NCBI GenBank assembly: GCA_965202585.1
Contig: OZ241829.1
Coordinates: forward strand, 65,658,001-65,722,000
Reading direction: 5' to 3'
Length of the DNA stretch: 64,000 bases
Source of the DNA: Thalia democratica
Lineage: Eukaryota
Shown one piece after another: positions 1 to 46,900 of this stretch (the first letter of the stretch is position 1; every line of letters begins with the position of its first letter). The notes below the pieces were generated by a model that was not told where the DNA came from, made no database searches, and was given only the letters and a program-made list of their open reading frames with translations. The position numbers and the translations under genes are program-made.

Positions 1-3000
1 AATTGGGAAATAGTTGAAACACACGTCGACAATGAGTATTGGACGTTCACAGAAGTGAACTACACTTGCAATCCCGGCTACACGCTTCTGCCCGGAGAAG
101 TTAGAACGCGTGTTTGCGGTGCCGAAAATGAGGACGATGTTTGGGATACTCAATCACCTCCAGTTTGCAAACCTGGTTTGACTGTTTATCTAAAGCTATG
201 ATATCATTTTTTTTTTGTAAACTGCTTATTCAATCTAACAAACATCACACCAGTTTTTTTGTATTGAAACTATAAGTTTCATTTTACTCATCAATTTTGA
301 AGCTAAACGACAAGCAAACAGCTTGCATTTTTCAGATTGCGGCAGACCGCCTGACGTAGCGAACCGAACTTACGACGATGACGTCATACTGGGCAAGTAT
401 TTTTACAACTCGGTGCTGAATTTCACTTGCGATTACGGTTTCGAAGATTCGAGCTCGGTGATTACGGGATCAATCAAGTGTGATGGCGGAAATTGGACTG
501 AGGGTGATACCGGGTGCCCCGGTTACACTTTAACAGGTTAGCTTTAGAGTTTGATGCAAGCTCAAAACAACTAACTTTATCAAAATTATTTTATACAAAT
601 TGAAAATTGTTAAAGCGTGCAGTTATGTGCATAAGTGGTCAGAATTTGTGGTCTTTTTTAACGGTTTAAAGTTAAAACAGTAAATTTGAAGACAGTATTT
701 TAGTTATACGGTTAAGCTTAAACAGTCTAAATCTTTTTCTTGTCAGAAAATAAGTTGTTTAAAACAAAAATAAAATCAATTAAACAATTTCAATTTTAAT
801 AAATAAAGAATCGAATTTAAAACGGCAACGTTGTAGAACAAAATAAAAGAACTATTATCATAAAATATTTTTAAACAATTTTTTTTAAATTAGTTAGTGC
901 AAATCATATTTATAGTTTTGTCGAAACAAGTGCATGAAACTAAAATAAAAGCAAAATTAAAAATGTAATTAGTCCTCGTATAATAATTACTAACAGTTTT
1001 TTTTAACTTACTAAAATAAAATGTAATGTTTAAACTTTATTTCTTTAACAGAATGTGAAAGGCCACCAAGGTCAAGTCGCAATTTTTACGAGATCATCAA
1101 GGAGCCTTTCAAGGATCCGTTGTCAACAGAAGTTTGGCCGGGATCCCAAGTTGAATTTTCTTGCTTGGAGTTTTACGAGTTCAGCCCGAAAGTGGAGTTT
1201 TCAGTTCTGACTTGCCAACGAGACGGAAATTGGATTCCTGAGCTGCCACCTCCTTGCTTGCAAAGTTTGTCAGAATAACTATTAGAGATCAGTAAAAAGT
1301 CACTTTGTACGCTTTTACCACAAACGGTGGTTTCTATTGAGAATACAATACATAGTCAGGCGCATTACACCACAGTGACTATCTGGTGAGTTGAAGGAAA
1401 CTCATAACTTTTATTTTGTTTCAGTTTGCACGATTTTTCCCTACGTGGACCATGCGATTCGCACCATCGAAAACTACGTACAGGACGATGAGTACGAGTT
1501 CTTGTACATCCAGCTGAAGTTCACTTGCAAAAATGGTCACTCCTACGAGCAAAACCGCGCCAACAATCTGGTCGACTGCGAGATTGAAAGGGGATTTCCG
1601 GATTCCTCGCTGCTTCCCGTCTGCACGCAAGGTGAGACTCCGATAAAACTAACATCTAAACAAAAATAACTTAAGTTTAGTTATAAGTTACAAAACTATA
1701 AACCAGAAACATTATTAGGTTGAGTGTACAAAATTAACATTTTAAATTAAAATCCAGGGTATAAAACATTATTACTGATTTGCTGCCTAATACTTATATC
1801 AATGTGTGGATAAAAATATTTACGAGTTGTTGTGGATAGTTAATTAAAATATTCAGTGTGCAGCCCTATACCGGAAGTAGAGAACAGCGCCAGCTACAGA
1901 GTGTATTCGGATGTATATCCTCATTCAAATGAAAGCAACCCGTTCATTGGAAGCTCGGTTGAATATTTTTGCGAAAATCATTACGTGTCCTTGCAAACTT
2001 TCGCAAAATGTCTTCCGAACGGTACTTGGGACACCATTGTGCAATGCTATCCAGGTTTGAAATTTTTATTGCTGTTATATTTTAATATCTTTAGACAAAA
2101 AGTTTTGGAAGCAACGTTGTGTTGAATATATATATTACTGTCATGGAAGTTGTATTAGCTTTTCAAAGTTGTCATTTGTTGCATTCTACCTTATCTGTTC
2201 TGAAGACGAAAGCTAAGTATTTTATTCTTATTAAACTATAATTACTCTTTTTTTGTAAACAATCAAAAAGTAATTTCAAGTAATACTCTCAGTAGTTTTC
2301 GTTTTAATGAAGACTAAATAAAAATAAAATGTACCATCTAAACGAATCTACTCAAAAGTAACTTAAAAGTTGTAACTAAATGTTGTTTGACTTTTACGTA
2401 CATAGTATCTTTTAAATAATTAATTTTGCTCATGGGAATGTCAGACTAAATCAGTAACTTCATAAAGTTAAATACTTTTTGCAGATTGTGGACAATCTCC
2501 AACGATTCTGAATGCAATCAAAAGTGTTACTTACCTTCAATTGAATGAAACCTTGAGCTTGGAATCAGAAGCGACGTACACTTGTGAGAATGGCTATTGG
2601 AGCGTGCCTGCCATCAAAAATGTCACTTTCACGTGCCAAGAAGCTCCCTTGTGGAAGACTACTGAGTTTATATGTTCAAAAGGTGATACATAAATAACAA
2701 CTTTAACTAAGCAATTACTTCTAAGTGTAATAAATTAGTTCACTAAAAAATACTATTGAAAAAAAAGACAAACTTGTTAAAATTATCAAGCTTAAATTTC
2801 AGCTAAATTAAGTTATATAAGCTTAAGTTTTCAACAAATATATTAAGTTTAGTTATAGTTTATATAGCTATGAGTAAAAAAAAGTTAAGTGGTCAAGTAT
2901 GTAAAATTCGTATTTCAAAGTAAAAATCCAGTATATAAAATTTTTAACATATATTTTAAACAAACCATGTCTACTGTAAATATGTCTTTAAAAAAAATGC

Positions 3001-6000
3001 TGTTACAAAACTTTTTTTACTCTTTTAAGCTAAGTACATTTTAACAAACTATGTGATAAACTTGTTTTATTCAATCAACCAACGTTCACAATTCAGAATG
3101 CCCAAAAACTGAACCGTCAACCGGTGTGATAGCCTCACTAGAAAATCTTGCTTACGACGACTTGTTCGTAGCAGGCAGTAAACTCACGTTTTCATGTGGA
3201 AACAATGGAGTTTTGATTGGTGAGGAATCAGTAGAATGCCATGTCAATGGAAGTTGGAACTCTGCTTTTCCATCTTGTTACAGTCGTTAGTTTTAACTTA
3301 CTTTTACTACACTAATGAAAAATCAAATAAAGAGAAATTTTAATGACTTCATAAGTTCTTTTTTGGAGATACAGTATGTGTTCAGTTAATATTTTTGACA
3401 TAAGAACTTTTTTTTATTCAAATAAACTAAATTACAGCTAAAAGAAAACTTAAATTTAAAACACATCTATATATAAAAGGATTTTTTTTTAACTTTTTTT
3501 TTTCGCTGGAAATAACTTTTAACTAAGTAGTTAAATATACAGTTCTTGTTTTCAAACTTATTGTTTAAAAATAATTGCATAAAGTCATCTAAAAAGTAGT
3601 TAAGTTCACATTAAAATTCACAAGTTTATAGCTACAAAACGCTTGTAAGAATTCAAGTAATAAAAACACGTTGTTTTTAGCTATTTATCTATTTTTAAAT
3701 AAAACAGAGTGTCCATCCATGGATCTGGAACTTGCCAACGGCTACGTTTACTTCACCAACCCGCTTCGACGGGGCTACTTTCTCGCCAGTGACGTGTTGA
3801 GTTACGAGTGCAAGGAAGGTTATTTTTTCCTGGAGGGAGTCAAAGAAGATTACGTGTACGAGTGTGCGGAGAATGGCGCGTGGAACAACACAAAAAGTCC
3901 CTTCTGTGTCACCGGTACGTTGACGCCAATAGTCGTTCACCAACTGCATATTTGTATTAAGGATTTATTTTCAAAGCAATAAGATTAATAACCTTTTTAT
4001 GTTTCTTAGTTTATAAGTTAGTAAAAAAAAGTTATTTTACATGTTTTGTTGTGTGAAATTGATTTGCACGTGATTACAAAAGCCTTATGTATCAGATACA
4101 ATTCTCAGAGTTCAAAAAAAAAAAATACAGTTGAAAATTTAAAAAACTTATGCATGTGTCTAGCTTTTTTCAACTGCTGCAAATAAACTGACTTAGATTG
4201 TAAGCACACATCTGTTCATCTATAAAGAGCACAGAAAATAGTTAGCCAAATGTATTTTAACGTATCAATAGTAGCTTTAAAAACAAGGTGTACATAGTTT
4301 TTAGCTGAAATTGTAACGATTCAAGTATTTAAGCAAAAACTTTAAAAAACTTGGAATTATAAAAAAACTAAAAATTTCCACTGTTAAGTTTTAAATTGTA
4401 GAACAAAAATATTTTTGAAATTTATTTCAATAAGTAGTTATTAGCAGAGAGATACTTGAAACTTTAAACCTGAGCAACTCAAAAATGCTAACATCTAAAA
4501 GTGTTTTTTACACACATAGATTGCGGCGACCCACCCGAAGGTGACTTGGTTTCTTGGAATGTCACTGACGGTCCGGCCGGAGACAAGCTGTGGAGCGGCG
4601 TGGAAGTCACCTACGAATGCAAACCCGACCACGAGCTGAAATGGGGGGAAGCGGCAGTTGTGGTTTGCGGGAGCGACGGAAGTTGGAGCGAAGGTACCGC
4701 GCCTACATGCGCTCCCGGTACAGTTAACAAACTAATATCTAACACAGCTTGTTGTGTAATTATTTGTGTTGACTACAAAAAAGCTTAACTTACATAGTAA
4801 AGAGCTTTTTTAAATATTAACAATTACGAAAGTTCGAATTAACTATTACTATTAGGTTTCGGTGAGAAAAATTCCGACCTTATCAAATACTAATAAAGTA
4901 GTAAACTGCACTATAGAGTGTTGTTTATGTAATGAGACCTGGTAACAAATAGAATAACTAAATCGCATTTTTATTATAACTATTTACTAACACAGCTTTT
5001 TAAAATATTTTGTTCTCTTCCTGTTAGTGTGCGACGTGCCACCCATGGTCGAGCATTCCACCACTTCCAACGACACCGTGGCGCTTGAAGCGGAGAGCTT
5101 GGCGTTGAGCGCGATCGAGTACCACTGCGACAGCGGGTACCACATAAACGACGAATCGCTGAGAAGAATCAACTGCGAGTCCGGACCTGTTTGGAAGTAC
5201 ACGCGGCTGCCTACGTGCTTAAAAGGTGATAACATTAAACGTTTAGGTGATTTTTAAAACGCGACGACCATAAACTACAGTACATGTGACATTCTGAGTA
5301 ATAGTTTTTGCGGGGCAGTTTACTGCTTATTGGCTGATGGCGAAAACAGCATTCCAGCTTTGCTGAACTTAGCCGAAATAACAACTAATTTTTGTAACTC
5401 AAAACAGATTTTAAGTACAGTTTTAATATTTCACAGTTTGTGATGATGTACCCGACGTACCTAACGCCAGATCAACTAATTTTACTAACGTTGAAAGAAT
5501 AGAGGATGATTATGTAAATGGTACTACGGTGGAAATAATTTGCAGTGAAAATTACACACAAATCGAAACACAGACGGTGTGTGGCGTCGACGGCAAGTGG
5601 ACACCAAAAATGAATTGCTACCCAGGTCTGAAACTATGTTTAGTTTTTATAAAAAAAAATCTTATTTAATTATATCTACAAACATATTTCTGTGCTAATC
5701 TTATCCAAGCTCAAAAAGGCATATGTTTTAAATAAAGTTAAGAGGTATGATATCTAAGTAACTAAGTTAATAAAATTTCATCAAATATATTTTTTTTCAG
5801 AATGCGAAGCATTAAAAGACCGTGACCATGCAAACAAAACTGTAATAAAGTCAGTGGTGATCAACGAAAATAAAACGCTTGAGTACGTAGTCAGCTACGC
5901 ATGCGACGAAGGTTACAGAACTGAACCGAGAAATACTGACACGATCCACACCTGCGACAACGGCAAATGGAGCTACAATGAGTTTGAATGCGTGGAGGAT

Positions 6001-9000
6001 CTTAAAAGTTGGTAGTGTTACGTATAAGCATAGATTAACAATCTTTAATGTTATTTGAATACTTACTTGCTTTTTTCGTTAGCTTTTAATAGCTTTCATT
6101 ACAAACAGTTTGCCCGGATTTACCGTTAGATGATCCGAACAGGGAGTTTAAGTTTTTAACTGAAGTTGAAAAAGGGTATTTGGTTGCTGGAACTGAGGTT
6201 ACTGTGACCTGTAACGGCTTTACAGTTGTTAGCAACACGGATCTGACATACAACAAGTGTCTTCGAAACGGAATATGGCAAAATGTCTTTCCTATTTGTT
6301 TTCCAGGTTAAAAATTTAGATTTTGACTTTTGTTTTATAATTATTTAAATTACAGTAAGATAACTCTGTTTTAATTTGTATTGGTAAAAGTTATTTAGAG
6401 GTATTTATCTGTTAATCAGTGTAAAATCTTAATAAAATTTTTATCGATATATATTTTTTTATTTACTAATCTACTTTTTTTTCAGATTGTTTGGATTTGA
6501 ACACTTGGTCTTCTTCTGCTATTATGGTGAATATTATTAACTATGATCATAACTACCAACAAAACAGTGGACGTTTGTATCCCACTCGAATTGAATACGA
6601 CTGCTCACATGGTTATACGCCACTAAACCCTCACGACACAAATATTTATTGCAACCCGGAAACTGGCAAATACGAACCGGAACCAAAATGCCTTATTTGT
6701 AAGTAATTTCCTATGTTATTAAGTATGTTTCTCTCAATGAAAAATTATTGAAGATTATGTATATCAACCTAATTAAAAACTACATTTATTTTAACAAAAC
6801 ACTAATGCGCATCTATTTTTAAACTTTGTTTTAATTTTTGTTTTTTTAAATTTTTCTATACTTGTTTTTTAGCTAAACGAGGTTGTATAAACAAAGTAAA
6901 ACAAAAAATTTGTGTAATTTCTTATGTAACCAACAAAGTTGTACAAACAGATAAATAACAAACAACCTTTTTATGTTTCAGTCTGCCAAGGTGTACCGTC
7001 GTTCGACGGAGCAACGACCCACATCGTCCACCAGCGGCAGCCCCAACTGTCCAGTTTCGTCTACGGCGACGTGCTGACGTTTTCCTGCGACGGCCACAAA
7101 CGGTTTCTTCCTTCCAACCCGTCGCTGACTTGCCAGGAAAACGGAAGGTGGGGACCCGACACGCTGATTGGCTGCGTTGAAGGTAAGAAAAAAATCCCCA
7201 AAAGTATGAGTACAATCTAATTTGACTTTTTTTTTTACAGATGACGTGTGCCCGTCTCCACCGCAAATCGCCTTTTCCTCGCACCACGACTACTACAGGC
7301 CTCCGACTCCGGCAAACTCTACCGACTCGATGTGGCTTCCGGAAACGATCCTGCATTACGAATGCAACGATCAGTACCCGATAACCGTTCCCGACGACTT
7401 CTTCGGGGCGAAATGCACCAGCAGCGGCGCGTGGGTGGGCGCGTATGGAAAATACCATCCTTCGCATGAAAAACCTCACGATATTAAAATGGACGACAAG
7501 AAGTTCAAGGAAAAGTTTGGAAAATGCGTCACTGGTATTTTTAATTTTTAATGTTTAGTCAACCTTTTTGTGTTTATAATTCACTTGAAGTAAGCTAGTA
7601 GCAGTTTATAGTTTTTTAGTTAGAAATTACGTTCGAAAAGGTACATGATGTCAATTTCAAGTTATTTTGATTTAAAAACTAAACTACCACCAGTACCTTT
7701 GAAATATATTGTTCCTAGGTTAACAATTACCACTTCTAATTAAGTTTTTAGCAAGCCTTTATGTTTCCAATTTTAGTTTATTAAAACTTTTTTTACAATT
7801 GTCTATATTAACCTATGTACGACTCTGTTTTCGGCATGCTTTTTAGAAATTGCGTGGGATTTTTAAAAGGTTTAAAAAATAAGTTTATTTAAAAAATGCA
7901 AAACTTATTTCAGAGTGTGAGTTTCCCGATCCACATAACTCAATAAAAACTGTGCTAAAATATCTTGAAGTCAATGCGTCATACTCCATACCTTCAGTCG
8001 TCAGGTACACCTGTAACGAGGGTTACCATTGGACGCGGGTGGCAGTTGTGAGCTGTCGCCACCAAGATATTCAAGATAAAGGTCCTTTCGGAAGATTAAA
8101 CACGCCGCTTGGATTCTGTGCACCCGGTTAGCTTCATTTAGGTTCAAAGATAAATTTTTGTAAACAAATTATAAAACAACTAATTGTTTTTAAATTAACA
8201 ACCGTAAGTATTTATCTTTTTTGTTTTTTGATATGTCGAATAGTTTTAGTATTGTTAAATCCTTTCAGCGCAAAGTATTGCTACTGAAGTTTGTACATAA
8301 GTTTAAGGTAAAATAAAAAATTACTAATAACTTTTAGCTTGCCCGCCACTCCCATTTTTAATACGAAACGGGGTTAAGCGAGTTATTAGGCAACCGAATC
8401 GAAGGAGCTTGGTTTCCTTCTCGACAACCATACACTACTTTTGCAACCAAGGATTCACTCCGACTTTTGTAAACAGCCGATACAGTTGCAACTACGCTGG
8501 GAGCTGGCAAAATTCAGAGCTGAACCCTAGGTGTTTGAGGCGTAAGTTGTAACAATATTGATAAGTGTTTGTTTATCAGTCCACCTACTATTTGACTTTA
8601 AGGCTGCCCTAACCTGCAAAACGATCCGTACGGAAGTCTTGAAGCATCTGTACAAGCTCGGACTAATTTCTATCTGGCCGGTGACCGAGTTGAACTAAGC
8701 TGTGATGATGACTACGTGTTGAGCTCAGACTTAACAGCTTCAAGTACAACTTTGTCCTGCCTGTCAAACGGAAGGTGGAATTACGAAAAAATACCGGTTT
8801 GTATTAAAAGTGAGTTACGCAAATCAAAAGCTTTTATTCTTATTCTGTTGAACTTTCATTTATGTAAGAAAAAAATTTAAGACGTTCTTTTATTTTGACA
8901 CCTACACTTGTTTTAGAAGTTTTTAAGCACTAAAATTAGTGAACTTACAAGTTTAGTTGATTCGTTTTTTCATTAGTTTAAATGCATTTAAACTAATTTA

Positions 9001-12000
9001 TTAACTTAATTTTATCTACAATATACTTCTTTTCTATTCAATTTGTTTATTTTAAGGATGTGACGACCCTCCTCGAGGCGACTTTCTAAATTCCACGATA
9101 AAGTTCAGTCACGCGCAAGGAGAATACTGGTCGTACACCGTAGTGGAGTACGTATGCAAGGAAAGACACACTTTTAAATATCCCGATGAGGACGGGACTC
9201 GCACTTGTGAAGGAGACGCAAACTGGAGCGATGACTCCCCTCCTGAGTGTGCTCCCGGTTAATAAATGATGAAAATATTATCACTATCCCAACAAATACT
9301 TTTAGTTATATTTAAATCTGTGTGTAAGAAATAACAAATAAACTACACTTAACAGAATGTGAAACTCCTCCAGCCGTTGAAGGCTCAACAATTAATATTT
9401 TAAACGACTCATTTATTGAATACGAATGTTTAGACGGTTATCACATTGACAACGAGTCGAACAGCGTTTTCGAGTGCAGGCTCGGTCCTGTTTGGTTTCC
9501 CTTGGAAACTCCTGTCTGTCTAAAAGGTAAATAAATACCAGTTTTTACTGCAAACTGTTTGTTAGACAAATTTCAAGCGTCTAAAAAGATCCTCTCAGGC
9601 TCAAATCAATTTCCTACTCTAAAATTTTTTAACGGACTATTTTTAAGTGTCTTGAAATGTTATCAAATTTATTACGAGTTTATCTTTTCTAGAATGCAAC
9701 AGCATACCCGTGTACGATAAAACGTTGCCCGCTGTTGTTACAAAGAATGTTTCAAGGGAGGGCAAGCTTATAACCGGATCATCGTTGAATTTCAGCTGTC
9801 AACCAAACTACGGCCTGATCAACTCGATATCGAGTTGTGGCCTCGACGGCAGATGGACGCCCGAGATCACGTGTGTTCGAGGTATGTATATTTGCACGTG
9901 AAAAAATAAATTAAAAACAACTCATTTTTTTGTTTTTAAAGATTGCGGGAATCCAGACGAGATCGACAACGGATCTTTCCTGGTCAACGAAGAGTCGGAT
10001 GAGTATCCTGAAGGTGAAGAGGAACTGTACAGCAGCAAGTATCCGCACCAGGTGACTTATTCTTGCAACCCGTTTCACTCGACGGTTCCCGGAAGCGAGA
10101 TGGTGTTGAAATGCTCGAATACCAGCTTCACGTTTGAACCTGAGTTGCCGGTCTGCTTGCCAGGTGACCAAGTCGTATACAAATGTTTAAGCTCATGATT
10201 TGTACTAAATTTTATTAAAAGTTTTAATCGGTTTTTTAAAGTTTTAATGTTTCAATTTATTTTAAAACCACAGAGTGTTCAACCCCGCCAACCAACAATT
10301 ATTCCACGTTTGATTTTTTCATGAGCACTCACCGTGTCTACCTACCGCCGAACAGAATAAAGTACACTTGCGAAGCCGGCTACAGAACTTTGCCTTCAGG
10401 TCTCAGCGTGCTGCAGTGCGGTGATGACGGGGAATGGACATTTGATGATTTCAAAAGCTGCTACACTGGTTAGATTGTTGACTAGGTTTATTTTGATGGC
10501 TTAAAAGTTAAAGTAAAACGGTCAGTTAAAAATATTGCTTAAGTAGTTATAGTATATTTTTATTCTACTAAAAAGTGATTACAAAACTTAATATTATACT
10601 GCTTTAGTAATAATAAAAACATTTTTAAACAACGTTTTTGTAATTGGAACTATAAAAGATTACTTTAATTACATTGCGTTTAAAAAAAGTATATTTCTAA
10701 AAGCTTTAATACGTCATTCACAATACTTTGAGCAGAGTGTAAACTTTTTTCATAAGTTTTTATATTTAAATAATACTAAACAAATTTAAAACAGTTAAGC
10801 AAAAATTACGGAAAAAATATACAAATACTAATTAAAGTACATTAGTATAACTTTTTCCACAACTTTAATAGAAACAGAATGCAATTCTGCGCCCCCACAA
10901 TTAGACAATGCAACTCAGCATTTCAAATGGCAGTATGAAGGGGTGCATCTTCCAGGCACGCAAGTCAATTATGTTTGCCAGAACGGCTTCATCATGGCCC
11001 CGCAGTTTTTCCAGGGATTTGAATGCAGCGAAAATTCGTTAGAATACGACATTCCTCTCACAACCAGAGAGTCGTTTACTTCTGGTGCTTGCTATCCGGG
11101 TTAGGTTTCAGAATATATATATATTAATTAAAACTTCTTTTTTGCTTTTTTATTTTGTTTTTAAGTTTTTTCCCATTTTGAATTAACAAAATTAACTGGA
11201 AATCTTCAGACTGTGGCGACTGGCCAGACATCCCGAATGGCAAACGGTTCACTGCGGATTCACAGTTTCTATCGGACTTGGTAGGAGAAAGACACGTTTT
11301 GATAATTTCATCCAACTATTTGTGCAACACAGGATATCTTTACACGAGCGCAAATAGCCTTGTAACATGCACTGATTCCTCAAAACCACTAGATGTTAAA
11401 AGTTGCTCTAGAGGTAATATTTTGTTTATAACTATTTATGAACAAAAACATAAACGTAACTAAAATTAAAAAAATAATATTTAAAAATCTAAACAAAGTT
11501 GAAAAGTGTATGTATTCCAGAATGTAAAAGTTTGCCAATTACAAGTATGGACTTTGCAACCGTCGAATATTACAAAAGGCCAAGGACAGATATTAATGTG
11601 GGAGGAACAGAATTCAGATTTGTTTGCGACCAAGGGTACTTCCTCGTGGACCGTCCTGGCTCGTTGCGTGTGAGCTGTGAAAAGCTACGCGACGGTTTTC
11701 AAGAAGATCTAGGAATATGCGGAGTCATTGGTTTCAGGTGTGATCTTAATGGTATCTGGCACTCTTTGGAAAGATCGCGCTGCATTACAAGTAAATTTAA
11801 CGTACCACTTTGAATTAAACACTAGTATTTTTTGCATCAAACTAGTTGGCATGTTTAGTAGTTGAGTGAAACGTGTTCCATGAATTTAATTTAGGTTGTC
11901 TGACACCACCAAGCGACGATTTGGCAACTTGGAAAATTACCAGCACATATTGGGAAGGAAGACTGTTCACCGACACGGTTGTAGAGTACACTTGTCCTGA

Positions 12001-15000
12001 AACCCACACGCTGACCAACTTCACTGATTCAACTCGTATATGTGGAAGAGACGGAAGTTGGAGCGATCCTGTTGCACCCAGCTGTATCCCTAGTAATATT
12101 CGTTATTATTTTTAGTGAACTCTAGATTCCAGAGCTTTAGCTTATAGTTTTACCTCATTAAATACTTTTAAAGTAACGTGTTACAATACACATAAAACTA
12201 TTTTTCTTAGCTGTTAAATCTCACGTACGATGAAAATAAAAGTTTATGAACACTTTGGACACGCTACCAAAGTAAATTCTAAGGAGTGATATAGCTAACG
12301 TGTACTAAGTAATGATAATTATTGAGTATTTAATTTTCAGTTTTAAACCTTTATACTATCAATACTTCTTATGACAATCACTTCTGCATTAAAACATACA
12401 TATGGGAAATCAACTACTTTTTTTTGTAAAACTTACTAATTTACGCAGCTTAATGAGTTTAAGGACGTCTGCTTAAGTTTTGTGTTCAATTTAGCTAACT
12501 TTAAGTCTTTTGCATAAAAATTTGGCTTTTAGATGGAAGACAATATATCAAAAAAACTTAATTACTGTTTACAAAAAGTTTGCCTTCTTTGGCAACAAAT
12601 ATAACTGTACCAAATATTGATTAGTTATAAAAGTTTTGAAAATTTCAACAAATTTCAGTTTGCGAACTGTTGCCAACTTCCATCGAGAACGGTCAATTCC
12701 ACCAGTTGACCGATCAGCATGCCAGCATGAAAGATGTAGAAGGAACAAGGAAGAGTTACGTTTGCGACGAAGGCTACCACCTGCTCATATCCTCTTACTT
12801 TCCAGCTTCTTTTACATTCCACTGCAACCAACAAGTACCTCCGAATGCTGTGCAGTGGAATGAAGTCAGTTCTGGGAGCCAAGTGGCAAAACCGTTGTGC
12901 ATTAAAAGTTGGTGTTTTTTTATTAAACGTTGTATATGAAAAGCAATATACGCCTTATTGATAAAAAATTTTCAGGACAATGTAAAGCGTATCAAATAAT
13001 AACGGATGCTCATTCGTACGATGAGGCAGTTGAAAAGTGCGACAATTTGTCTGCAGACCTTCTTGGACCAACCCTTGACGATGTAGATTATGAAAAGTTT
13101 GTTTTAAAACACTTTGCTAACCCTACTACTTTTCTAGTTACGTTTTATAAAAAGAAAAAATTGCATTCAAAACGGTGATTGTTTATTTTCTATAACATTA
13201 AAAATGTAAACTTATACAACAGGTATTTGAAGGCTATAACTCAGCACATGAGTGATGAAAACTTCGAGTACACTTACATCTACGGAAAGCCAGAATTGAG
13301 CGACACCTTTTTAAACTGGTGTTCAGGCTTCCCAAAACCTTCCGCCTCTTCGATCTGCTATTTCATCCGCACAAACGGCTTCTGCGTTGTTAATTTAGAC
13401 TGTGAAAGCAAACGGCCGATTGTATGCGAAGTTGACCGCTTCGAGCTTAGGCCAAGAGAAGAGTCAAACTCATACCAGTTTGCCGACGATGCTTGCAGAT
13501 CGGTAGAAGGTACCCTGATGTCTACGACTTTTTTCATCCCTGCTTATATGCCGTAAGTACTTTAGAGAAGTTATCTTTGTTTTTCTTGTTATTTGCATTG
13601 ACAAATTTCGGTACTTGAATAGTAGAAAACGGTAAGTTAAAACATTTTCAAACTGAAATGTTTATTTTTATTAAAGTTCACCTGAGTTGACAAGTCGAGC
13701 AAAAATAATAATAAGCCGTATTTTGAAAATAGTTATATGAACATCTTTAAAATTTTACCACATTCATAGAGAACAATAATAAAAAACAAGGGTTTATGTT
13801 GTCACAAAAACATTTTCTCAGGTCAAAATAGTTTTGCTAAACTTTTAAAAACTATACAAATAACTAACTTCTGGAGGTAAAATTAAGCACTTAAAATCTA
13901 CATGTATTATACTATACCCAAATTACAGTCGAATAAAGAAGATCATAGACACATTACCAGGAAGCAAGATGTGGACTGGTTTGCAGCGGCCCGGGTCCGA
14001 TTATTCCGCAAACGACTTCGTCACCCTGCCCGACGGTAAAAGAATTCTGATATCTCAAATATCGCAGTTCTGCCGGCGCGAACCCGACAACTTCCAAAGC
14101 ATTCAGCATTGCGTGGACTACAACCGAGATCGCGGCTGTTTGAGCGACTTCGGGTGCTACCAATCCTACCAGGCTTCAATCTGCGAAATTGCCGTCTGCT
14201 CAGCTCGAGACGCCAAAGTGCCAAATCTTCCTTACACGAGATGCAGCAGAGGAAGCTGGTACGTTTCAGCTGACAGATCAGAACGACTTGTCTGTTACGC
14301 AGGTACAACAACTGTTTCAAATATCGTTTTAGTATTTTTTACTATCAATTTTGATTCTTCAGATGTTCAGCATTTGTTTTCAGACTTGTATACTACAGTA
14401 GAATTATTTTAAGACTAAAAAACATGTTACTATGTAAATTTTTCTATATCGTTTTTCAACTTAATGTTTTTAAATTTCCGTAATTACTTAAATGACAACT
14501 TATAATTTTTTACAATTTAGTACAATTTAGTAAATATATACACGTTTTCGTAAGTTAATTAGGATAAAAGTAAAGTTAAAAGTTGCTTAAAGCTTTCATG
14601 AGTTCATTCATGAGTTTAAAACTTAGAAAATATATTCAAATAGATAAGTATTGCTACCTAAGCTAAAATAAAAGTCAAACTGAATTAAGACTCAAGTAAC
14701 AAATTGTATGAGTTTTGTCTACAATTATTTGTAATTGGACTATAAATGCAAGAAAAATAAGTACCGTTTTGAACTAAAATTATAATAACAGTATAATAAG
14801 TGTATTTGCCACAAGCTCATATCAAGTGCTTTATATAAGTAATTAAAAGCTTATGATAAAAATTACGCACAAATTCTATTCAAAAAAGCCAAGCAAAGAC
14901 TTTAAGCATGTAGCATTCTGTTTGTACATTTGTAGACAAACTACTTATTCAAAAAGAGATGAACTGATCCTTCTCTATATACAATTCATCAACGACATTA

Positions 15001-15703
15001 CTTTATAAAACAGGATTTGACATCAAACTGACAACGGAAAAAGGAAGTTGGGAAGAAACAAGAGACATGTGCGAAGATATGGGAGGTCAACTGGTCCACA
15101 ACACTTTGAAGAGATACGTTGGAAGACTTCGTACATCGTATAAGGAGTAAGTAGCTAAAGAATTTACTCAAGTTAAGTTGTGTATTGCTACTGAGCAAGT
15201 ATAATGAACAAGTTTTTAAAATTTGGTATTATCCATTCAAGCTCATTAGATTGATTATTTTTATAAATCTTTTGATAAAACGTGTTTTGGACGTGGAATA
15301 AAACATGACACTTTAAATTTTTTTTTACCATTTCAAAATCTCATTGAGCATAAGTTTTTTCTACATTAATAAAATCTTAAATTAAATATTAAATAATAAA
15401 AATTTTGAAATTTATCACTTATTCAGTTTGGTGGAAGAAGCGATTGACAGCAACGATGTTTGGATCGGATGCCAGCGGGCCAAGGACAAAACTTTGAACA
15501 GCGAGTTCCAACTGTTGAACGGCGAATATTTGTTCGCTTCCCGCGCAAACCCGTTTGAACAGCTGCTCTACTATTGGTCGGCTTCAGTGCCACGTGACAC
15601 CGAGCTCGATCAAGCCGTTGTCATAAGGCACGAGAAAAAAGCGCTCGAAAACTTGCCCAAGTCACAAGAACTTTACGGGCTTTGTGAAATTGGACATTAT
15701 TGA
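1..15703 (+). CDS. Large multi-exon sushi/CCP-repeat plus C-type lectin protein (5' end outside window); at least 29 CCP domains then 3 CTLDs
   Basis: Hand-spliced at AG/GT, all in frame. CCP exons (phase 1-1): 1-175, 336-536 (or 521), 1052-1264, 1425-1631, 1857-2054, 2485-2682, 3097-3285, 3708-3914, 4520-4717, 5028-5225, 5437-5625, 5801-6007, 6109-6306, 6486-6698, 6982-7182, 7241-7534, 7914-8126, 8338-8541, 8603-8809, 9057-9257, 9356-9526, 9693-9881, 9942-10163, 10274-10468, 10878-11099, 11210-11413, 11521-11790, 11895-12092, 12659-12907. Each shows the C-x-x-P...Y/F-x-C...C...W...C sushi pattern. Lectin exons: 12976-13096, 13223-13552, 13929-14302, 15014-15146, 15427-15703 (TGA). Confidence 0.92.
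12976..15703 (+). other. C-terminal block of three C-type lectin domains of the CCP gene
   Basis: Motifs SYDEAVEKC, MWTGLQR...EPDN...HCV...LSDFGC...ICE, SWEETRDMCEDMGGQL, VWIGCQR...GLCE. Each CTLD is split by a phase-2 intron. No hydrophobic tail before the stop. Confidence 0.85.
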
Positions 15704-18700
15704 TTTATTCTGTTTTTATTTTTTTTTATAAGTTAGTGTTTTCTATAAAATTCAAACTTGTATCAAATGATTTCTTCTAAAATTGTATAAGATTTAAATT
15801 TTAAATTTAGATTTTATAACGATATTTATCGTTTATATTTTGTCTAGTAGTATGTTTGATATATTAAGATATGGATAATTCAACAAATTAGAAATGTTCT
15901 GTTTTATTATATTTCAATTTTATTAAGCTTTGCATTTTGTTAAACTCCCGAAAACTAAATTTTATTTGTCAAACTTTCAAGTATTGGATTATAACAATTT
16001 TATTATTGTGTACTTTGAAAAGTTTCACTTGAAACAAAAGTTGTTTTTTTACTTCGTTGTTTACTTATTATACTTTAGTTTTAAAGGTTTGATTTATAAT
16101 ACTAAAGTTGTGGAGTGTATTAAGCAAAATTATATTTTTTAAATAATCATAAGTATTTCAAGTTTCTAATATAAACTATAAGCAAATATAAGACTTAAAA
16201 TAGTTTTCTTAAGGACGCTACAGTTTAAAATAAAAAAGACAATTTTCTATAATCAAATTTACCCAAGGTAAGTATTAAATTTTAATATATGTTTCTTAAC
16301 ATTTTTAAGCTACTTAAAAATGTAGCAGTAAGTAAAGTTTTTGTATTAGAAAAACAAAAAAGACCTTGTGAGTAATTTTTGTGATAGTTTGTTTTAACTA
16401 TGACTTAGCATGTTTAAAAATATCACGAAGCAGCAAATATGTATAAATGTAATGAATAAAAACATAAAAAATTAATTGATCTTTTAGGTCAAAAAAAAGC
16501 TATGCTGTTTTCTTTAGTCTTAATAAAAAGTGTAATATGTAAAAAATCAAAAAAAAAAAAACTTAAGACTTTTTTAAATTGAATAAAAAATAAAAGTTTC
16601 TCTAAATTTATTCGAAACGTTTTGAACTTTATAAATAATAGAAAAGTAGAAAAATAAGTTGACTTTTAAGATCATGAAATTATTTTTTAATGTTTTGATA
16701 TAATCGAAACAAAAAACTTATTATCTATAAAGCAAAAATAAACGTTTAAAATGTTTTTTTAACTGAATACGAACCTTAGGCTCAACTCCTTTATATTATC
16801 TCAAAAATGTGTTTAATATTATAAAGAATACCCATGTAATAAAAATAGATGGGCTCTTATATACAAAAAAATGTAGTTTTTGTTTAATCTTAATAAAAAT
16901 TATTATACCTATGAAGTTAGATTATAATGTTTTTTATCTAAACTTGTTATAAATCATAAGCTCAATTAAATTTTTTTGAAACGTGTTTATTCTTATAGAT
17001 ATAAACAATTAAAAAATAATTGAACTTTAGGTCACAAAGTTTTTTTTGATAACTCTATCTAAAAAAATTTGGTACTGAAAAACCAAGAAGTTTGAGCAAG
17101 ATCTTGTTTGTTAAAATTGAAAAAAATTATAAGTGTAACAGATTAAATTAAAACTGAGTAAAAGTTAAAAAAAAGTTTTCAAAATGCACGAATATCTAAA
17201 AGCTTCTCTTTCCCACTATAATAATATTAAAAGTTGTTTATACTCCACCAAGTCGAAAACTACTTAAATTTGTTATAAAATCATGTAAACTTTTCCTTTT
17301 AAAATAAAGTTTTACAAAAAAAAAGTTTTTTTATTTTAAGGAAAATTAATATATCTTTTGAATATTGAAAATATAAAATACTCGATATGACAACATGCAA
17401 GAAATAAAAATAAATAAATTCATCAATTTTGTTGTCTACAAAATGTTGAATTGAATTAACAAAATCTTAATTAATGTTTAAAAAAAAGAAAATTTAAACT
17501 TATTAATGAAAATATAAGTAATCAAACTAAATAGTAACGCTAAAAAAAATAAGGAATTTTTCTTACCATGACGAAATATACCGATTGAATAAGCAATTAG
17601 CAAGGCCTTATAATCGTTCTACATAATGAAAATATGACAAACAATGTTGTTTGCTGTTTTTTTTTTTACTTTGAAGTATTTCAAACAACTCATATAGATA
17701 TTATGAATATGCTTGCGGTACGTTATAAAAAAGTAGAACGAAAAATATAAATTTTTAAAACTTTACATCGGAAAGCTACGAGAATTAGAATATGGTGTAA
17801 GCCTAGCTTTAAATGATTTAGTTTCTTAAACTTAGATCGTACATCTTAGAAAATAATTTAGTTAGTGGAACGTCATATACAATGTTTTTTCTAACAAAAA
17901 TTCCAGCACGGACCAAAAGTTATTTGATTTCGTAGGAAGAGTACCAGAATTAGTTTACTAAACCGCCTCAAATCTACTTGAACATAACGTTTTAATAAAA
18001 AAAATGTTTTAGATTTAAAACTCTTTATTTCTGGAAATCTAGCAATTCTGCTGGAAGGAATTATTTAAGCTTCACGCCAAATTCTTGCGATTCAAAACGA
18101 ATGTTTACAATCTAAATACTTCAACAAACGCCGACACGTATTAAAAAAAAAGATTACTGAGGATTAACTAAGAAGTTCATTGTAACTTTAATTGAAAGTG
18201 ATATACAAACTAGTTTTTTAAAAACGACATTTTATTCTTACGAAAGATAAAATAGAAAAACGACTTTTAAGATAGTTATTGAAAAAACTTTGGTCAAAAT
18301 ATATTTATGAGTTATGTGAAAAAACATTTATTTTAAGCTTCTAAGTTTCGAAAAATAACTGTTACATGTTAAATAATGGTTTCAACTGCTGAGCTGATTT
18401 TAGTAACAAGTTTAGTTGGGTTACAAGTTGTTGAATATTTTATAACATTTTTTGTTTATTATTACGATTATTTTCAGGAAAAAAAAAACTTTTCATTAGT
18501 TTTTATAATTTTACACTTGAAATTTTATGCTTACTTTGCTAATTTTATTTTGTAACCCAAGACACATTTTACCCAATCTGATTTTTTCTATAGATAGTAC
18601 ATTATATTCATTTTAGTTTTTAAAAAACAACAAATTGAAAACTAAAATAAGTGATAGTTATATAAAACTTATAAACTTTTAAGTTTATTGAAAACGACAA

Positions 18701-19122: not shown

Positions 19123-19938
19123 TCACCATTCCTTTATGTTCTTTTCCGAAGAAACGAATTCACCGTTCGGGGACTCCACCCCGACCGGAAGCGTCGCCAG
19201 GTAAACCGGGGCTTCGGCGCCCTGATCGGGCGTCCTCGAGGCCTTCTCCCCGCCCAAGTCCGTCTTCACCCACCCGGGGCACACCGCGTTGATTATGACG
19301 TCACTACCCTTCAGCTTCCTGGCCCACACGAAGGTGAGCGCGGACATGCCGACCTTGGACATTCCGTACGGCTGCTCCACGAACCCGTCCTCCTTGCAAG
19401 TCCCCCTCCGGCAGCTCTCGACGAACTCCTCCATCTTCCCCGTCAGCTCCTCCTCCGTCAGCGTCTCCCTCCTGAAGAACTTTTGGTTCTCCTCGCTCAA
19501 CTGCTTGAGGTACATGATGCTCAAAGTGCTGGACACGTTGACGATCCTGCCACCCTTCCTCACAATAGGAAATAGGATCCTGCTGATGTCGACGGTTCCA
19601 GTGTAGTTCGTCCTCACGCAGTCCTCCGCCTTTTTCACTAGCGGCGTCGCGTCGGTCGAGTCGTACGCGATGCCCGCGTTGTTCACGATGACGTCGATGC
19701 CCCCGTACTGTGACGTCATGAAGCTTTTGAGCCGCTCGATGCTCTTGACGTCGCAAACGTCCAATTCGTGGAACTGGGGGTAGAGTCCCTCTCTCTCAAG
19801 GGTCTTCACCGCCTCCCTGCCGCGCTGCTCGTTCCTGGACAGAATGAAGACGTCCCCGTCGAACTTCTGGCACAGCCCCCTGACGATGGCGAGCCCGATG
19901 CCCTTGTTGGAACCTGTTACTATGGCAACCTTTGTCAT
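19123..19938 (-). CDS. CBR1: NADPH-dependent carbonyl reductase (CBR1-like SDR), 271 aa, intronless
   Basis: TGSNKGIG Rossmann motif, NNAG, catalytic YGMSK, CPGWVKTDLGG, and the CBR-specific helical insertion (TEEELTGKMEEFV). CBR1-like; orthology not tested. Confidence 0.93.
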   Translation of the reverse strand: MTKVAIVTGSNKGIGLAIVRGLCQKFDGDVFILSRNEQRGREAVKTLEREGLYPQFHELDVCDVKSIERLKSFMTSQYGGIDVIVNNAGIAYDSTDATPLVKKAEDCVRTNYTGTVDISRILFPIVRKGGRIVNVSSTLSIMYLKQLSEENQKFFRRETLTEEELTGKMEEFVESCRRGTCKEDGFVEQPYGMSKVGMSALTFVWARKLKGSDVIINAVCPGWVKTDLGGEKASRTPDQGAEAPVYLATLPVGVESPNGEFVSSEKNIKEW

Positions 19939-42455: not shown

Positions 42456-43935
42456 TCTTTCTTTCATAACATTACATTTTTACAATATTACTTAACTTAT
42501 ATGTGATGCACTTTATATTATCATGTTAACCAACTACACTATACACATCTATAAGGACACTAAGAGGTACGCATTTGCGTAAAGTACGCACTTACATTAA
42601 TAATGAGTTAATTTATTAAGTATAAATGTGAAAGTTTTTGCCTTTTTCAAACTTAAATAATGTGTAACTATATATTATCTTTACTTTATAGCCAAGTACA
42701 GTTTTTTTTTCAGTTAAACAGCTATGACGTTTTAGTTGTAACAAATATGGTTCATTTGCATTGCTAGCTGTTTTAAATATTACAAAGTTACATAAATAAG
42801 AAGTTTTTTTTTTAATTAAAACTGAACAAAGATTTTTTATCACATATACATGTTCCTCCTTATAACAAACTTAATAACTACATGTGCTTTTATATAACTA
42901 ACAAGTTTCTAATATAAAATTTTGTTTTATTAATATTTTATTATCTATTAATTAAAAATTAATATTTTAATATCTATATGATTTGATTCTTTTAATTTAT
43001 TTTAATAACATTTTTGAATGTGTGATTATTTTTGAAATTATTATTGTCACTCAGAAAAATTAAAAAAAAAAATCCTAAAGCTTGTTAGCATTTTCATATT
43101 AATTAACTTAAATTTCATAACTTAAAACTTATAAGTTTTCTTATTAATAATTAATTACAAAACTTGTAAACTGACTATTTCAATTAAGAAAACATAACCA
43201 AACCAGTTTATAAATGATGTATTTTTTATTAAAATTAAATTTTGACATGTTATTACTTACTTGTGCTTTGTGTCATGTTATTCTTATCATGTTCAACAGG
43301 GAAAATGTCCATATTCAATTTGCGTCCTCACTGCGGGGAAGCGGGTCCGGCTCACCGCCTTGTGACCGGTTTCGTGCTGGACGAAAACATCAGTACTTCT
43401 GTTAAGAAAAGTTTGCCCTGTTTGTATGTATATTGTATAATATTATCAGTGAACTTTCATAGATATTGCTGAATTCTACAAATAAAAACAGTTGTGTATT
43501 GTTGACATTTTTTTAATTTTCTTTAATGTTAATTACTTTAAAACGATTACTCATCTAAAACATGTGGATTTATAATCTTTTCATTGGATAAAACTTAATG
43601 AAAGTAGTTGCTTCCTTTTGTTAATAAATAATTTAATTTTTGTATTTTACCCTAAAAAGAATTCAGAGAGAGCTCTTTTTTATTTTTTCTTTTTATATGA
43701 ATTTCATTCAGTTATTAAGATTATGTATATTAACCTAATTAAAAACTACATTTATTTTAACAAAACACTAATGCGCATCTATTTTTGAATTTTGTTTTTT
43801 TAAATTTTTCTATACTTGTTTTTCAGCTAAACGAGGTTGTATAAACAAAGTAAAACAAAAAAATTGTGTAATTTCTTATGTAACCAACAAAGTTGTACAA
43901 ACAGACAAGTAACTAACAACCTTTTTACGTTTCAG

Positions 43936-46900
43936 TCTGCCAAGGTGTACCGTCGTTCGACGGAGCAACGACTCACATCGTCCACCAGCGGCAGCCCCAA
44001 CTGTCCAGTTTCGTCTACGGCGACGTGCTGACGTTTTCCTGCGACGGCCACAAACGGTTTCTTCCTTCCAACCCGTCGCTGACTTGCCAGGAAAACGGAA
44101 GGTGGGGACCCGACACGCTGATTGGCTGCGTTGAAGGTAAGAAAAAATCCCCAAAAGTATGAGTACAATCTAATTTGACTTTTTTTTTCACAGATGACGT
44201 GTGCCCGTCTCCACCGCAAATCGCCTTTTCCTCGCACCACGACTACTACAGGCCTCCGACTCCGGCAAACTCTACCGACTCGATGTGGCTTCCGGAAACG
44301 ATCCTGCGTTACGAATGCAACGATCAGTACCCGATAACCGTTCCCGACGACTTCTTCGGGGCGAAATGCACCAGCAGCGGCGCGTGGGTGGGCGCGTATG
44401 GAAAATACCATCCTTCGCATGAAAAACCTCACGATATTAAAATGAACGACAAGAAGTTCAAGGAAAAGTTTGGAAAATGCGTCACTGGTATTTTTAATTT
44501 TTAATGTTTAGTCAACCTTTTTGTGTTTATAATTCACTTGAAGTAAGCTAGTAGCAGTTTATAGTTTTTTAGTTAGAAATTACGTTCGAAAAGGTACATG
44601 ATGTCAATTTCAAGTTATTTTGATTTAAAAACTAAACTGCTACCACCAGTATCTTTGAAATATGTTGTTCCTAGGTTAACAATTACCACTTCTAATTAAG
44701 TTTTTAGCAAGCCTTTATGTTTCCAATTTTAGTTTGTTAAAACTTTTTTTTTACAATTGTCTATATTGACCCATGTACGACTCTGTTCTCGGCATGCTTT
44801 TTAGAAATTGCGTGGGATTTTTAAAAGGTTTATAAAATAAATTTATTTTAAAAATGCAAAATTTATTTCAGAGTGTGAGTTTCCCGATCCACATAACTCA
44901 ATAAAAACTGTGCTAAAATATCTTGAAGTCAATGCGTCATACTCCATACCTTCAGTCGTCAGGTACACCTGTAACGAGGGTTACCATTGGACGCGGGTGG
45001 CAGTTGTGAGCTGTCGCCACCAAGATATTCAAGATAAAGGTCCTTTCGGAAGATTAAACACGCTGCTTGGATTCTGTGCACCCGGTTAGCTTCTTTTAGT
45101 TTCAAAGATAAATTTTTGTAAACAAATTACAAAACAACTGAATGTTTTAAATTAACAACCGTAAGTATTTATCTTTTCTGTTTTTTAATATGTCGAATAA
45201 TTTAGTTTTGTTAAAGCCTTTCAGCGCAAAGTATTGCTACTGAAGTTTGTACATAAGTTTAAGGTAAAATAAAAAATTACTAATAACTTTTAGCTTGCCC
45301 GCCACTCCCATTTTTAATACGAAACGGGGTTAAGCGAGTTATTAGGCAACCGAATCGAAGGAGCTTGGTTTCCTTCTCGACAACCATACACTACTTTTGC
45401 AACCAAGGATTCACTCCGACTTTTGTAAACAGCCGATACAGTTGCAACTACGCTGGGAGCTGGCAAAATTCAGAGCTGAACCCTAGGTGTTTGAGGCGTA
45501 AGTTGTAACAATATTGATAAGTGTTTGTTTATCAGTCCACCTACTATTTGACTTTAAGGCTGCCCTAACCTGCAAAACGATCCGTACGGAAGTCTTGAAG
45601 CATCTGTACAAGCTCGGACTAATTTCTATCTGGCCGGTGACCGAGTTGAACTAAGCTGTGATGATGACTACGTGTTGAGCTCAGACTTAACAGCTTCAAG
45701 TACAACTTTGTCCTGCCTGTCAAACGGAAGGTGGAATTACGAAAAAATACCGGTTTGTATTAAAAGTGAGTTACGCAAATAAAAAGCTTTTATTCTTATT
45801 CTGTTGAACTTTCATTTATGTAAGAAAAAAATTTAAGACGTTCTTTTATTTTGACACCTAAACTTGTTTCAGAAGTGATTAAGCACTAAAATTAGTGACC
45901 TAACAAGTTTAGTTGATTCGTTTTTTCATTAGTTTAAATGCATTTAAACTAATTTATTAACTTAATTTTATCTACAATATACTTCTTTTCTATTCAATTT
46001 GTTTATTTTAAGGATGTGACGACCCTCCTCGAGGCGACTTTCTAAATTCCACGATAAAGTTCAGTCACGCGCAAGGAGAATACTGGTCGTACACCGTAGT
46101 GGAGTACGTATGCAAGGAAAAACACACTTTTAAATATCCCGATGAGGACGGGACTCGCACTTGTGAAGGAGACGCAAACTGGAGCGATGACTCCCCTCCT
46201 GAGTGTGCTCCCGGTTAATAAATGATAAAAATATTATCACTATCCCAACAAATACTTTTAGTTATATTTAAATCTGTGTGTAAGAAATAACAAATAAACT
46301 ACACTTAACAGAATGTGAAACTCCTCCAGCCGTCGAAGGCTCAACAATTAAAATTTTAAACGACTCATTTATTGAATACGAATGTTTAGACGGTTATCAC
46401 ATTGACAACGAGTCGAACAGCGTTTTCGAGTGCAGGCTCGGTCCTGTTTGGTTTCCCTTGGAAACTCCTGTCTGTCTAAAAGGTAAATAAATACCAGTTT
46501 TTACTGCAAACTGTTTGTTAGACAAATTTCAAGCGTCTAAAAAGATCCTCTCAGGCTCAAATCAATTTCCTACTCTAAAATTTTTTAACGGACTGTTTTT
46601 AAGTGTCTTGAAATGTTATCAAATTTATTACGAGTTTATCTTTTCTAGAATGCAACAGCATACCCGTGTACGATAAAACGTTGCCCGCTGTTGTTACAAA
46701 GAATGTTTCAAGGGAGGGCAAGCTTATAACCGGATCATCGTTGAATTTCAGCTGTCAACCAAACTACGGCCTGATCAACTCGATATCGAGTTGTGGCCTC
46801 GACGGCAGATGGACGCCCGAGATCACGTGTGTTCGAGGTATGTATATTTGCACGTGAAAAAATAAATTAAAAACAACTCATTTTTTTGTTTTTAAAGATT

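Follow-up and report, generated by a model that had tools for sequence, protein, structure and literature searches.

A Thalia democratica gene with 59 predicted CCP modules followed by three C-terminal lectin-like domains

Selectins are built from a CTLD (C-type lectin-like domain), an EGF domain, a row of complement control protein (CCP, or sushi) modules and a transmembrane (TM) segment, in this order; in the selectins and in Drosophila Furrowed the lectin domain is N-terminal, and 2-10 CCP modules are present. Among the regulators of complement activation (RCA), whose extracellular chains are made up of CCP modules only and bind C3b/C4b, factor H consists of 20 CCP modules and CR1 of about 30, which derive from long homologous repeats. 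Here we describe a gene of the pelagic tunicate Thalia democratica (G000:C5:65644594-65673703, plus strand; about 65 exons in 29.1 kb) in which 59 CCP exons are followed by exons for three lectin-like domains. Its 3' half occupies positions 1-15703 of a 64,000-nucleotide (nt) stretch of DNA (G000:C5:65658001-65722000), which is referred to as the window and whose numbering is used below; the 20 kb upstream of it were read as two additional loci (L004 and L006). Like selectins and Furrowed, the gene combines C-type lectin domains and CCP modules in one extracellular chain, with the CCP modules as a spacer arm. However, its lectin domains are C-terminal, there is neither an EGF domain nor a TM segment, and it has three CTLDs instead of one and 59 CCP modules instead of 2-10. 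With the RCA proteins it shares a long chain of phase-1 CCP modules encoded by one exon each and a higher-order internal duplication, but these proteins lack a lectin domain, whereas the gene in the window has a lectin tail and about twice as many CCP modules.

A preliminary description of the window had recognized 29 consecutive CCP exons and taken them as a minimum for the gene. Exactly 29 such exons, with one module each, are indeed found at positions 1-12907 of the plus strand, the first being cut by the window start, but they represent only the back half of the array. Extending the gene model upstream, as had been proposed, yielded 30 additional CCP exons of the same anatomy in the 13.4 kb 5' of the window (the first at L004:7212), which brings the total to 59, and a candidate signal-peptide exon. 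All 59 CCP exons have lengths that are multiples of three, are bordered by ag and gt in phase 1, and contain no stop codon. In the window, the ag acceptor lies two bases before the codon of the first cysteine (a few codons further upstream in CCP33 and CCP46), and in most exons the gt donor, preceded by N, is found seven bases past the fourth cysteine. Exactly four cysteines are present in 28 of the 29 window exons and in 58 of the 59 exons of the whole gene, and a tryptophan, which in the Sushi pattern of about 60 residues lies between the third and the fourth cysteine, in 45 of the 59. Domain and homology searches were performed exon by exon or with database proteins. In the window, Pfam Sushi (PF00084) matched 20 exons above and five below the gathering score; the four exons with no Pfam match all keep the four-cysteine pattern. 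The 29 upstream exons scanned whole gave 24 matches above the gathering score, four sub-threshold matches and one exon with no match, so that the gene as a whole has 44, 9 and 5 exons in these categories, one exon straddling two loci being left out.

From ATG to TGA the exons sum to 13,323 nt, or 4,441 codons, and the frame stays open across all 64 introns. The predicted product has about 4,440 residues, a mass of about 490 kDa before glycosylation, and 64 N-x-S/T sequons. Neither a TM-like segment nor a segment of the glycosylphosphatidylinositol (GPI) type was found in any exon (maximum 19-residue Kyte-Doolittle hydropathy, 1.33), the C-terminus is polar, and RNA continues unspliced beyond the stop codon as 3' untranslated region (UTR); this is in agreement with the lack of a membrane anchor noted before. 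In the exon scans, Sushi was the sole match above cut-off, next to sub-threshold Lectin_C matches in two tail exons, and EGF was not matched. A candidate signal-peptide exon at L004:6594, about 620 nt before CCP1, would encode about 24 residues with a core rich in leucine, isoleucine and phenylalanine. No other open reading frame (ORF) within the 5 kb that precede CCP1 begins with ATG, is strongly hydrophobic and has a phase-1 donor, and we infer the role of this exon from hydropathy and phase only.

RNA evidence for the gene comes from spliced contigs of two runs of a 2016 marine metatranscriptome and represents a different individual from the assembly. One contig of 2,255 nt covers the CCP59 exon (12659-12907; four cysteines, no Pfam match) and all five lectin exons, that is, tail exon 1 (12976-13096, the N-terminal third of CTLD1), tail exon 2 (13223-13552, the remaining CTLD1 and the N-terminal third of CTLD2), tail exon 3 (13929-14302, the remaining CTLD2 and a three-cysteine mini module), tail exon 4 (15014-15146, the N-terminal third of CTLD3) and, from 15427 onward, tail exon 5 (15427-15703, the remaining CTLD3 and the stop codon TGA at 15701-15703). 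The contig extends unspliced for about 675 nt beyond 15800 as 3'UTR (15704-16475), and an AATAAA signal at 16455 fits the contig end. The borders of the tail exons had been predicted by hand from splice sites and phases, and each joint in the RNA has GT..AG borders located exactly on them; a contig from the other run confirms the last two joints. A further contig splices 11586-11790 to 11895-12069, which is the CCP57/58 junction (GT..AG) and sets the donor of CCP57 at 11790. RNA thus supports five tail junctions in addition to the CCP57/58 junction, and the CCP59 exon and all five lectin exons share one RNA. The order of two CTLDs, a short cysteine module, a third CTLD and a stop codon, which had been proposed from the letters of the window, is confirmed by these junctions, which also support the coupling of a long CCP arm to lectin-like domains in one gene. 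The preliminary description had also considered that complementary DNA might assign the lectin exons to a separate gene; we reject a separate lectin gene, as the RNA contig splices CCP59 to every tail exon.

The tail consists of CTLD1, CTLD2, the mini module of about 38 residues, which has three cysteines and resembles a CCP module without its middle, and CTLD3. A serine, an aromatic residue and a cysteine about six residues further on can be read in the N-terminal parts of all three CTLDs. CTLDs are marked by a WIGL-type core motif and by two conserved disulfides (C1-C4 and C2-C3). CTLD1 has YIYG and the cysteine pattern, CTLD2 has MWTGL, all four conserved cysteines and one extra cysteine pair, and CTLD3 has VWIG and the first and the fourth of the conserved cysteines (C1/C4) without C2 and C3. 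Per-exon evidence for these domains is handicapped because introns split the CTLDs: taken alone, the CTLD1 and CTLD2 exons reach Lectin_C (PF00059) scores of 17.7 and 17.4 bits, below the cut-off of 22.6. Support is weakest for CTLD1: its C-terminal half shows an in-register match to the carbohydrate-recognition domain (CRD) of SP-D (E 0.12), and 24 of the 30 Atlas clusters nearest to it are Lectin_C. For CTLD3, a Lectin_C score of 34.3 bits (cut-off 22.6) was obtained at residues 146-270 of P0010, a 274-residue spliced ORF of a close relative whose pieces are 85-91% identical to the window exons and in which exons 61 to 64 are joined in the same way. In PDB and the Atlas, P0010 lies nearest to CTLDs of MRC2, MRC1 and DEC-205.

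When the CTLD2 exon (13929-14302) was compared with 1.84 billion representative proteins by phmmer, only eight matches were obtained. They include an unnamed fragment with 86% identity, whose 90%-identity cluster contains P0010, an unnamed fragment with 45% identity, a coral protein annotated as "C-type mannose receptor 2-like", in which Lectin_C occurs five times (E 1e-9), and a clam protein in which it occurs six times (E 1e-7); a scan of JGI metagenome contigs with an alignment of the tail found no relative. To judge from these comparisons, the tail has no named orthologue among the representative proteins searched, and none had been recognized in the preliminary description; its sole close kin are unnamed marine fragments and its nearest named kin generic tandem-CTLD proteins. 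The layout of the tail is conserved: in an older paralogue, located at C5:29.9 Mb, CTLD2 is likewise followed by the mini module and CTLD3, with 28-49% identity. As to the carbohydrate recognition envisaged in the preliminary description, CTLD1 and CTLD3 lack the calcium- and sugar-binding motif and have FPK and VPR, respectively, at the position of its triplet, while CTLD2 keeps part of the motif (EPD, glutamine, Ser-Asp). When positions 14077-14095 are compared with P0010, P0001 and P0011, the CTLD2 triplet is EPD here, EPN in the 86% relative and QPD in the relative with about 45% identity. Every cysteine is conserved in these relatives; in the close one EPN is combined with glutamate and Ser-Asp, in the distant one QPD with glutamine and His-Asp. 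Carbohydrate binding by CTLD2 is thus possible.

Beyond selectins and RCA proteins, four other systems invite comparison. The nearest neighbours of the tail are the members of the mannose-receptor family (MRC1, MRC2, DEC-205/LY75), which likewise have serial CTLDs in which the sugar site is mostly lost; the similarity is weak (best E 4e-4). However, these receptors have N-terminal ricin-type and fibronectin type II (FNII) domains, a TM anchor, 8-10 CTLDs and no CCP modules, and none of the ricin-type, FNII or TM features was detected in the exon scans. The G3 region of lecticans (EGF-CTLD-CCP) also belongs to secreted matrix proteins and places a CTLD beside a CCP module at the C-terminus, but there a single CTLD is followed by a single CCP module, and lecticans possess an N-terminal link/Ig region and a core bearing glycosaminoglycans, both unlike the gene in the window. 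The oyster protein CgCLec-CCP is, similarly, a secreted invertebrate protein with CCP and CRD and no collagen stalk, but it has only one of each, and its function was shown experimentally (PMC8605247). Oikosins of Oikopleura are secreted extracellular proteins of another pelagic tunicate that contain the same module types; the available parts of the respective study report none in which CTLDs follow a long CCP array, and we found no sequence relation (PMC3390340). Our literature search yielded no described protein in which a long CCP array is followed by C-terminal CTLDs. The gene is not a selectin, an RCA protein, a lectican or a member of the mannose-receptor family; its layout has no named relative, and yet both of the extracellular modules from which it is assembled are very common.

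The 59 module peptides, each exon taken separately, were aligned all against all. Modules 30 positions apart score 94 on average, compared to a background of about 37 +/- 4, a value not reached by any of 20,000 shuffles of module order. CCP2-27 are collinear with CCP32-57 at 29-53% identity, and weaker periods of 11 and 19 modules are apparent within each block. The alignments thus indicate that a block of 30 modules was duplicated long ago and that the 29 CCP modules in the window correspond to its second copy. Another giant CCP gene, about 74% identical in exons, is located on a second contig (G000:C1:35147122-35169284, minus strand; L003). It keeps modules 30-34 in order, the module preceding them being nearest to CCP27 and CCP29; the distance from CCP1 to CCP31 is 22 kb in this paralogue and 13 kb in the gene described here. 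A tail resembling P0010 was not found near it. Because the paralogue shares the module order, the block duplication predates the duplication that gave rise to the paralogue, and the CCP30/31 junction is intragenic. This junction consists of an ordinary AT-rich intron of 260 nt with no start exon inside. The alternative of two tandem genes divided at CCP30/31 is rejected on account of this ordinary intron and of the module order kept in the paralogue.

A second layer of duplication concerns the 3' third of the gene. Between 65.67 and 66.12 Mb this contig carries 12 copies of the tail, and six further copies are found on four small contigs, whereas only a single copy exists of the 5' part that extends from the signal exon to CCP33. 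Mapping of this array of about 460 kb with short probes showed that one copy begins at the equivalent of window position 1298, and that the remaining ten of the 11 other copies on the contig start at a breakpoint in intron 44 (6743-6761); the amplified unit spans CCP45-59, the tail and the 3'UTR. The second, 5'-truncated copy in the window (43712-53450, plus strand) is 98.6% identical to 6745-16498. Only 14 of 4,475 exonic sites differ between the two (0.31%; seven synonymous and seven nonsynonymous), in contrast to about 1.6% outside exons when substitutions only are counted (tail loci) and about 2.3% outside exons when the copy is compared over its full 9.7 kb with indel columns included. 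Divergence in the exons of this copy is about five times lower than in its introns. Across eight copies, substitutions amount to 0.07-0.34% in exons and 0.4-2.1% outside exons. The lower divergence of exons compared to non-exon sequence suggests that constraint acts on the copies or did so until recently. Tail exons differ by 0-2 nt each among copies, and we therefore reject the notion that the copies carry diversified lectin heads. Upstream of the copy at 43712-53450, the search for a start exon revealed only weak signal-peptide candidates, none of them convincing. Four tail copies (G000:C5:65904294, 65946052, 65987810 and 66029568) are spaced by exactly 41,758 bp, and their match to the CTLD2 exon is 33 nt shorter (360 nt vs 393 nt), a pattern suggestive of a deletion in frame, a higher-order repeat or a duplication in the assembly.

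We consider it probable that the gene encodes a secreted, long and flexible rod of 59 CCP modules with three lectin-like domains at its C-terminal end, which serves as a tether or cross-linker. CCP modules measure about 3.6 nm each, which would give the rod, if extended, a length of about 200 nm. The CTLDs would form a head that binds, chiefly through CTLD2, a glycan or some other ligand, and the CCP chain would add reach as well as many surfaces for the binding of proteins; with contacts at its two ends or along the rod, the protein would bridge the ligand of the head and the partners of the CCP chain. Action as a tether or cross-linker is suggested because no anchor is present.

Several observations weigh against a single rod of this kind with a ligand-binding head. 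The signal-peptide call is based on hydropathy alone, and the donor sites are weak. RNA contigs cover CCP57-58 and CCP59 to the tail but neither the region from exon 1 to CCP56 nor the CCP58/59 junction, so that a single 13-kb mRNA is a prediction. In addition, the 2,255-nt contig starts at the first base of the CCP59 exon (12659). This start may mark a branch in the assembly graph, caused by alternative upstream exons or unspliced RNA, and not the start of a transcript. Two variants of the RNA in the 3'UTR (a deletion at 15719 and T at 15738) fit truncated copies and not this copy, and the variant A at 15587 occurs in none of the copies of the assembly; the RNA may thus derive from this copy or from another. 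As to the head, CTLD1 remains sub-threshold, and BLASTP of its pieces against those of CTLD2 and CTLD3 gave no alignment. The site of CTLD2, with EPD, glutamine in place of the downstream glutamate, and Cys-Leu-Ser-Asp in place of Trp-Asn-Asp, is an incomplete version of the canonical combination of EPN or QPD, glutamate and WND. AlphaFold2, run on P0010 without an alignment, gave a predicted local distance difference test (pLDDT) score of only 31.

That RNA covers only CCP57 to the tail, that its 3'UTR variants match truncated copies, and that no convincing signal-peptide exon lies 5' of the second copy in the window would also suit a situation in which the 59-CCP frame is not translated as one protein, but shorter products arise from internal starts or truncated copies, or the amplified region is decaying. 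We regard this as quite improbable: all 64 introns keep the frame and no stop codon interrupts 13.3 kb, the paralogue on the second contig keeps the module order across the block junction, and RNA cover of the 3' end only is expected for a rare 13-kb mRNA. Moreover, divergence among the copies is 5-10 times lower in exons than in introns, and seven of 14 exonic changes are synonymous, pointing to constraint and not to decay. If a secreted CCP rod with a lectin head is thus retained, its service might lie in the extracellular matrix or in immunity, and we take a role in the matrix or mucous net and a role in immunity or complement to be about equally likely. In the first case, the protein would have a structural or adhesive role in the matrix of the tunic or of the mucous feeding net. 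Its head would cross-link the rods to polysaccharide, either cellulose or mucus glycans, and a demand for dosage would underlie the 3' amplification. In Oikopleura, which is also a pelagic tunicate, CCP and C-lectin domains are present in proteins of the filter house, and binding of the lectin domains to its cellulose scaffold was proposed by the authors of that study (PMC3390340); proteins with C-type-lectin-like domains, one of which also contains sushi modules, are found in secreted adhesive mucus of limpets (PMC7333891). Such precedents, together with the size, the potential for heavy glycosylation, the lack of an anchor and the tandem amplification of nearly identical coding sequence, make a matrix role possible, if tentative. 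The amplified copies, however, are devoid of the 5' two thirds of the gene and may add no dosage, and the low depth of the RNA contig, which was available in one data set, cannot rank expression.

An immune molecule, that is, a soluble pattern-recognition lectin, an opsonin or the lectin-targeted complement regulator considered in the preliminary description, would use its head for binding microbial or altered-self glycans and its CCP chain for recruiting or regulating C3 or MASP-type partners. Complement regulators such as factor H and CR1 are built of CCP modules, and the oyster CgCLec-CCP provides a precedent for a lectin with CCP and CRD, as it binds microbes and activates C3 via a MASP-like protease (PMC8605247). 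The change between EPN, EPD and QPD at the ligand-determining triplet among relatives would also fit a shifting specificity. On the other hand, the sequence reveals no feature for the binding of C3 or MASP, and 12 copies with almost identical heads (0-2 nt per exon) are unlike a diversifying recognition repertoire; an immune function is likewise possible, if tentative, and the lectin-targeted complement regulator in particular lacks specific support. If the matrix interpretation is taken further, the product, with its sister genes, would form a lectin-tipped fibre or cross-linker of about 200 nm that ties polysaccharide strands in the mucous net or tunic of the salp and is supplied in part via the 12-fold amplification. 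The extra 3' cassettes would then be spliced to the single 5' part or expressed separately as short forms. We advance this only as a speculation with little probability.

Should the full-length product exist, it would be among the longest CCP chains described, with its lectin end opposite to that of the selectins. The family seems confined to pelagic tunicates, a group in which both immunity and the secreted filters are nearly unexplored at the molecular level, and the formation of a fibre, if true, would provide a molecular handle on how these animals build sub-micron filters. The gene also combines two layers of duplication, an old one of a 30-module block and a very recent 12-fold amplification of its 3' third. 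Without a function, it is a notable gene model and not a new principle, as invertebrate genomes freely shuffle such parts.

The CCP exons of the window, all on the plus strand, were delimited by exon anatomy and Pfam scans as follows. CCP31 (1-175) begins at L006:9969, 32 nt before the window, reaches a Sushi score of 25.9 bits and is intact in the paralogue on the second contig. It is followed by CCP32 (336-521), CCP33 (1052-1264), CCP34 (1425-1631; four cysteines, no Pfam match), CCP35 (1857-2054), CCP36 (2485-2682), CCP37 (3097-3282), CCP38 (3708-3914), CCP39 (4520-4717), CCP40 (5028-5225), CCP41 (5437-5625), CCP42 (5801-6007), CCP43 (6109-6306), CCP44 (6486-6698) and CCP45 (6982-7182). CCP46 (7241-7534) is long, with 37 residues between the third and the fourth cysteine, has no Pfam match, and its boundaries are predicted. 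The array continues with CCP47 (7914-8126), CCP48 (8338-8541), CCP49 (8603-8809), CCP50 (9057-9257), CCP51 (9356-9526), CCP52 (9693-9881), CCP53 (9942-10163), CCP54 (10274-10468), CCP55 (10878-11099) and CCP56 (11210-11413; four cysteines, no Pfam match). CCP57 (11521-11790) is long and has six cysteines; its donor, like the acceptor of CCP58 (11895-12092), is supported by RNA. The intron between CCP39 and CCP40 contains, at 4749-4937, an interspersed repeat of about 190 bp, of which more than 40 copies with 71-87% identity are dispersed over many contigs.

Inside the amplified unit, an intact intronless ORF on the minus strand (19123-19938) encodes a short-chain dehydrogenase of 271 residues similar to carbonyl reductase 1. 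Unnamed marine relatives show 91% and 83% identity to this protein; its top-ranked tunicate match is from the ascidian Clavelina lepadiformis (51-54%), which shows the highest identity among the top named matches, and vertebrate carbonyl reductases are about as close by score. The ORF was presumably copied together with the amplified unit.

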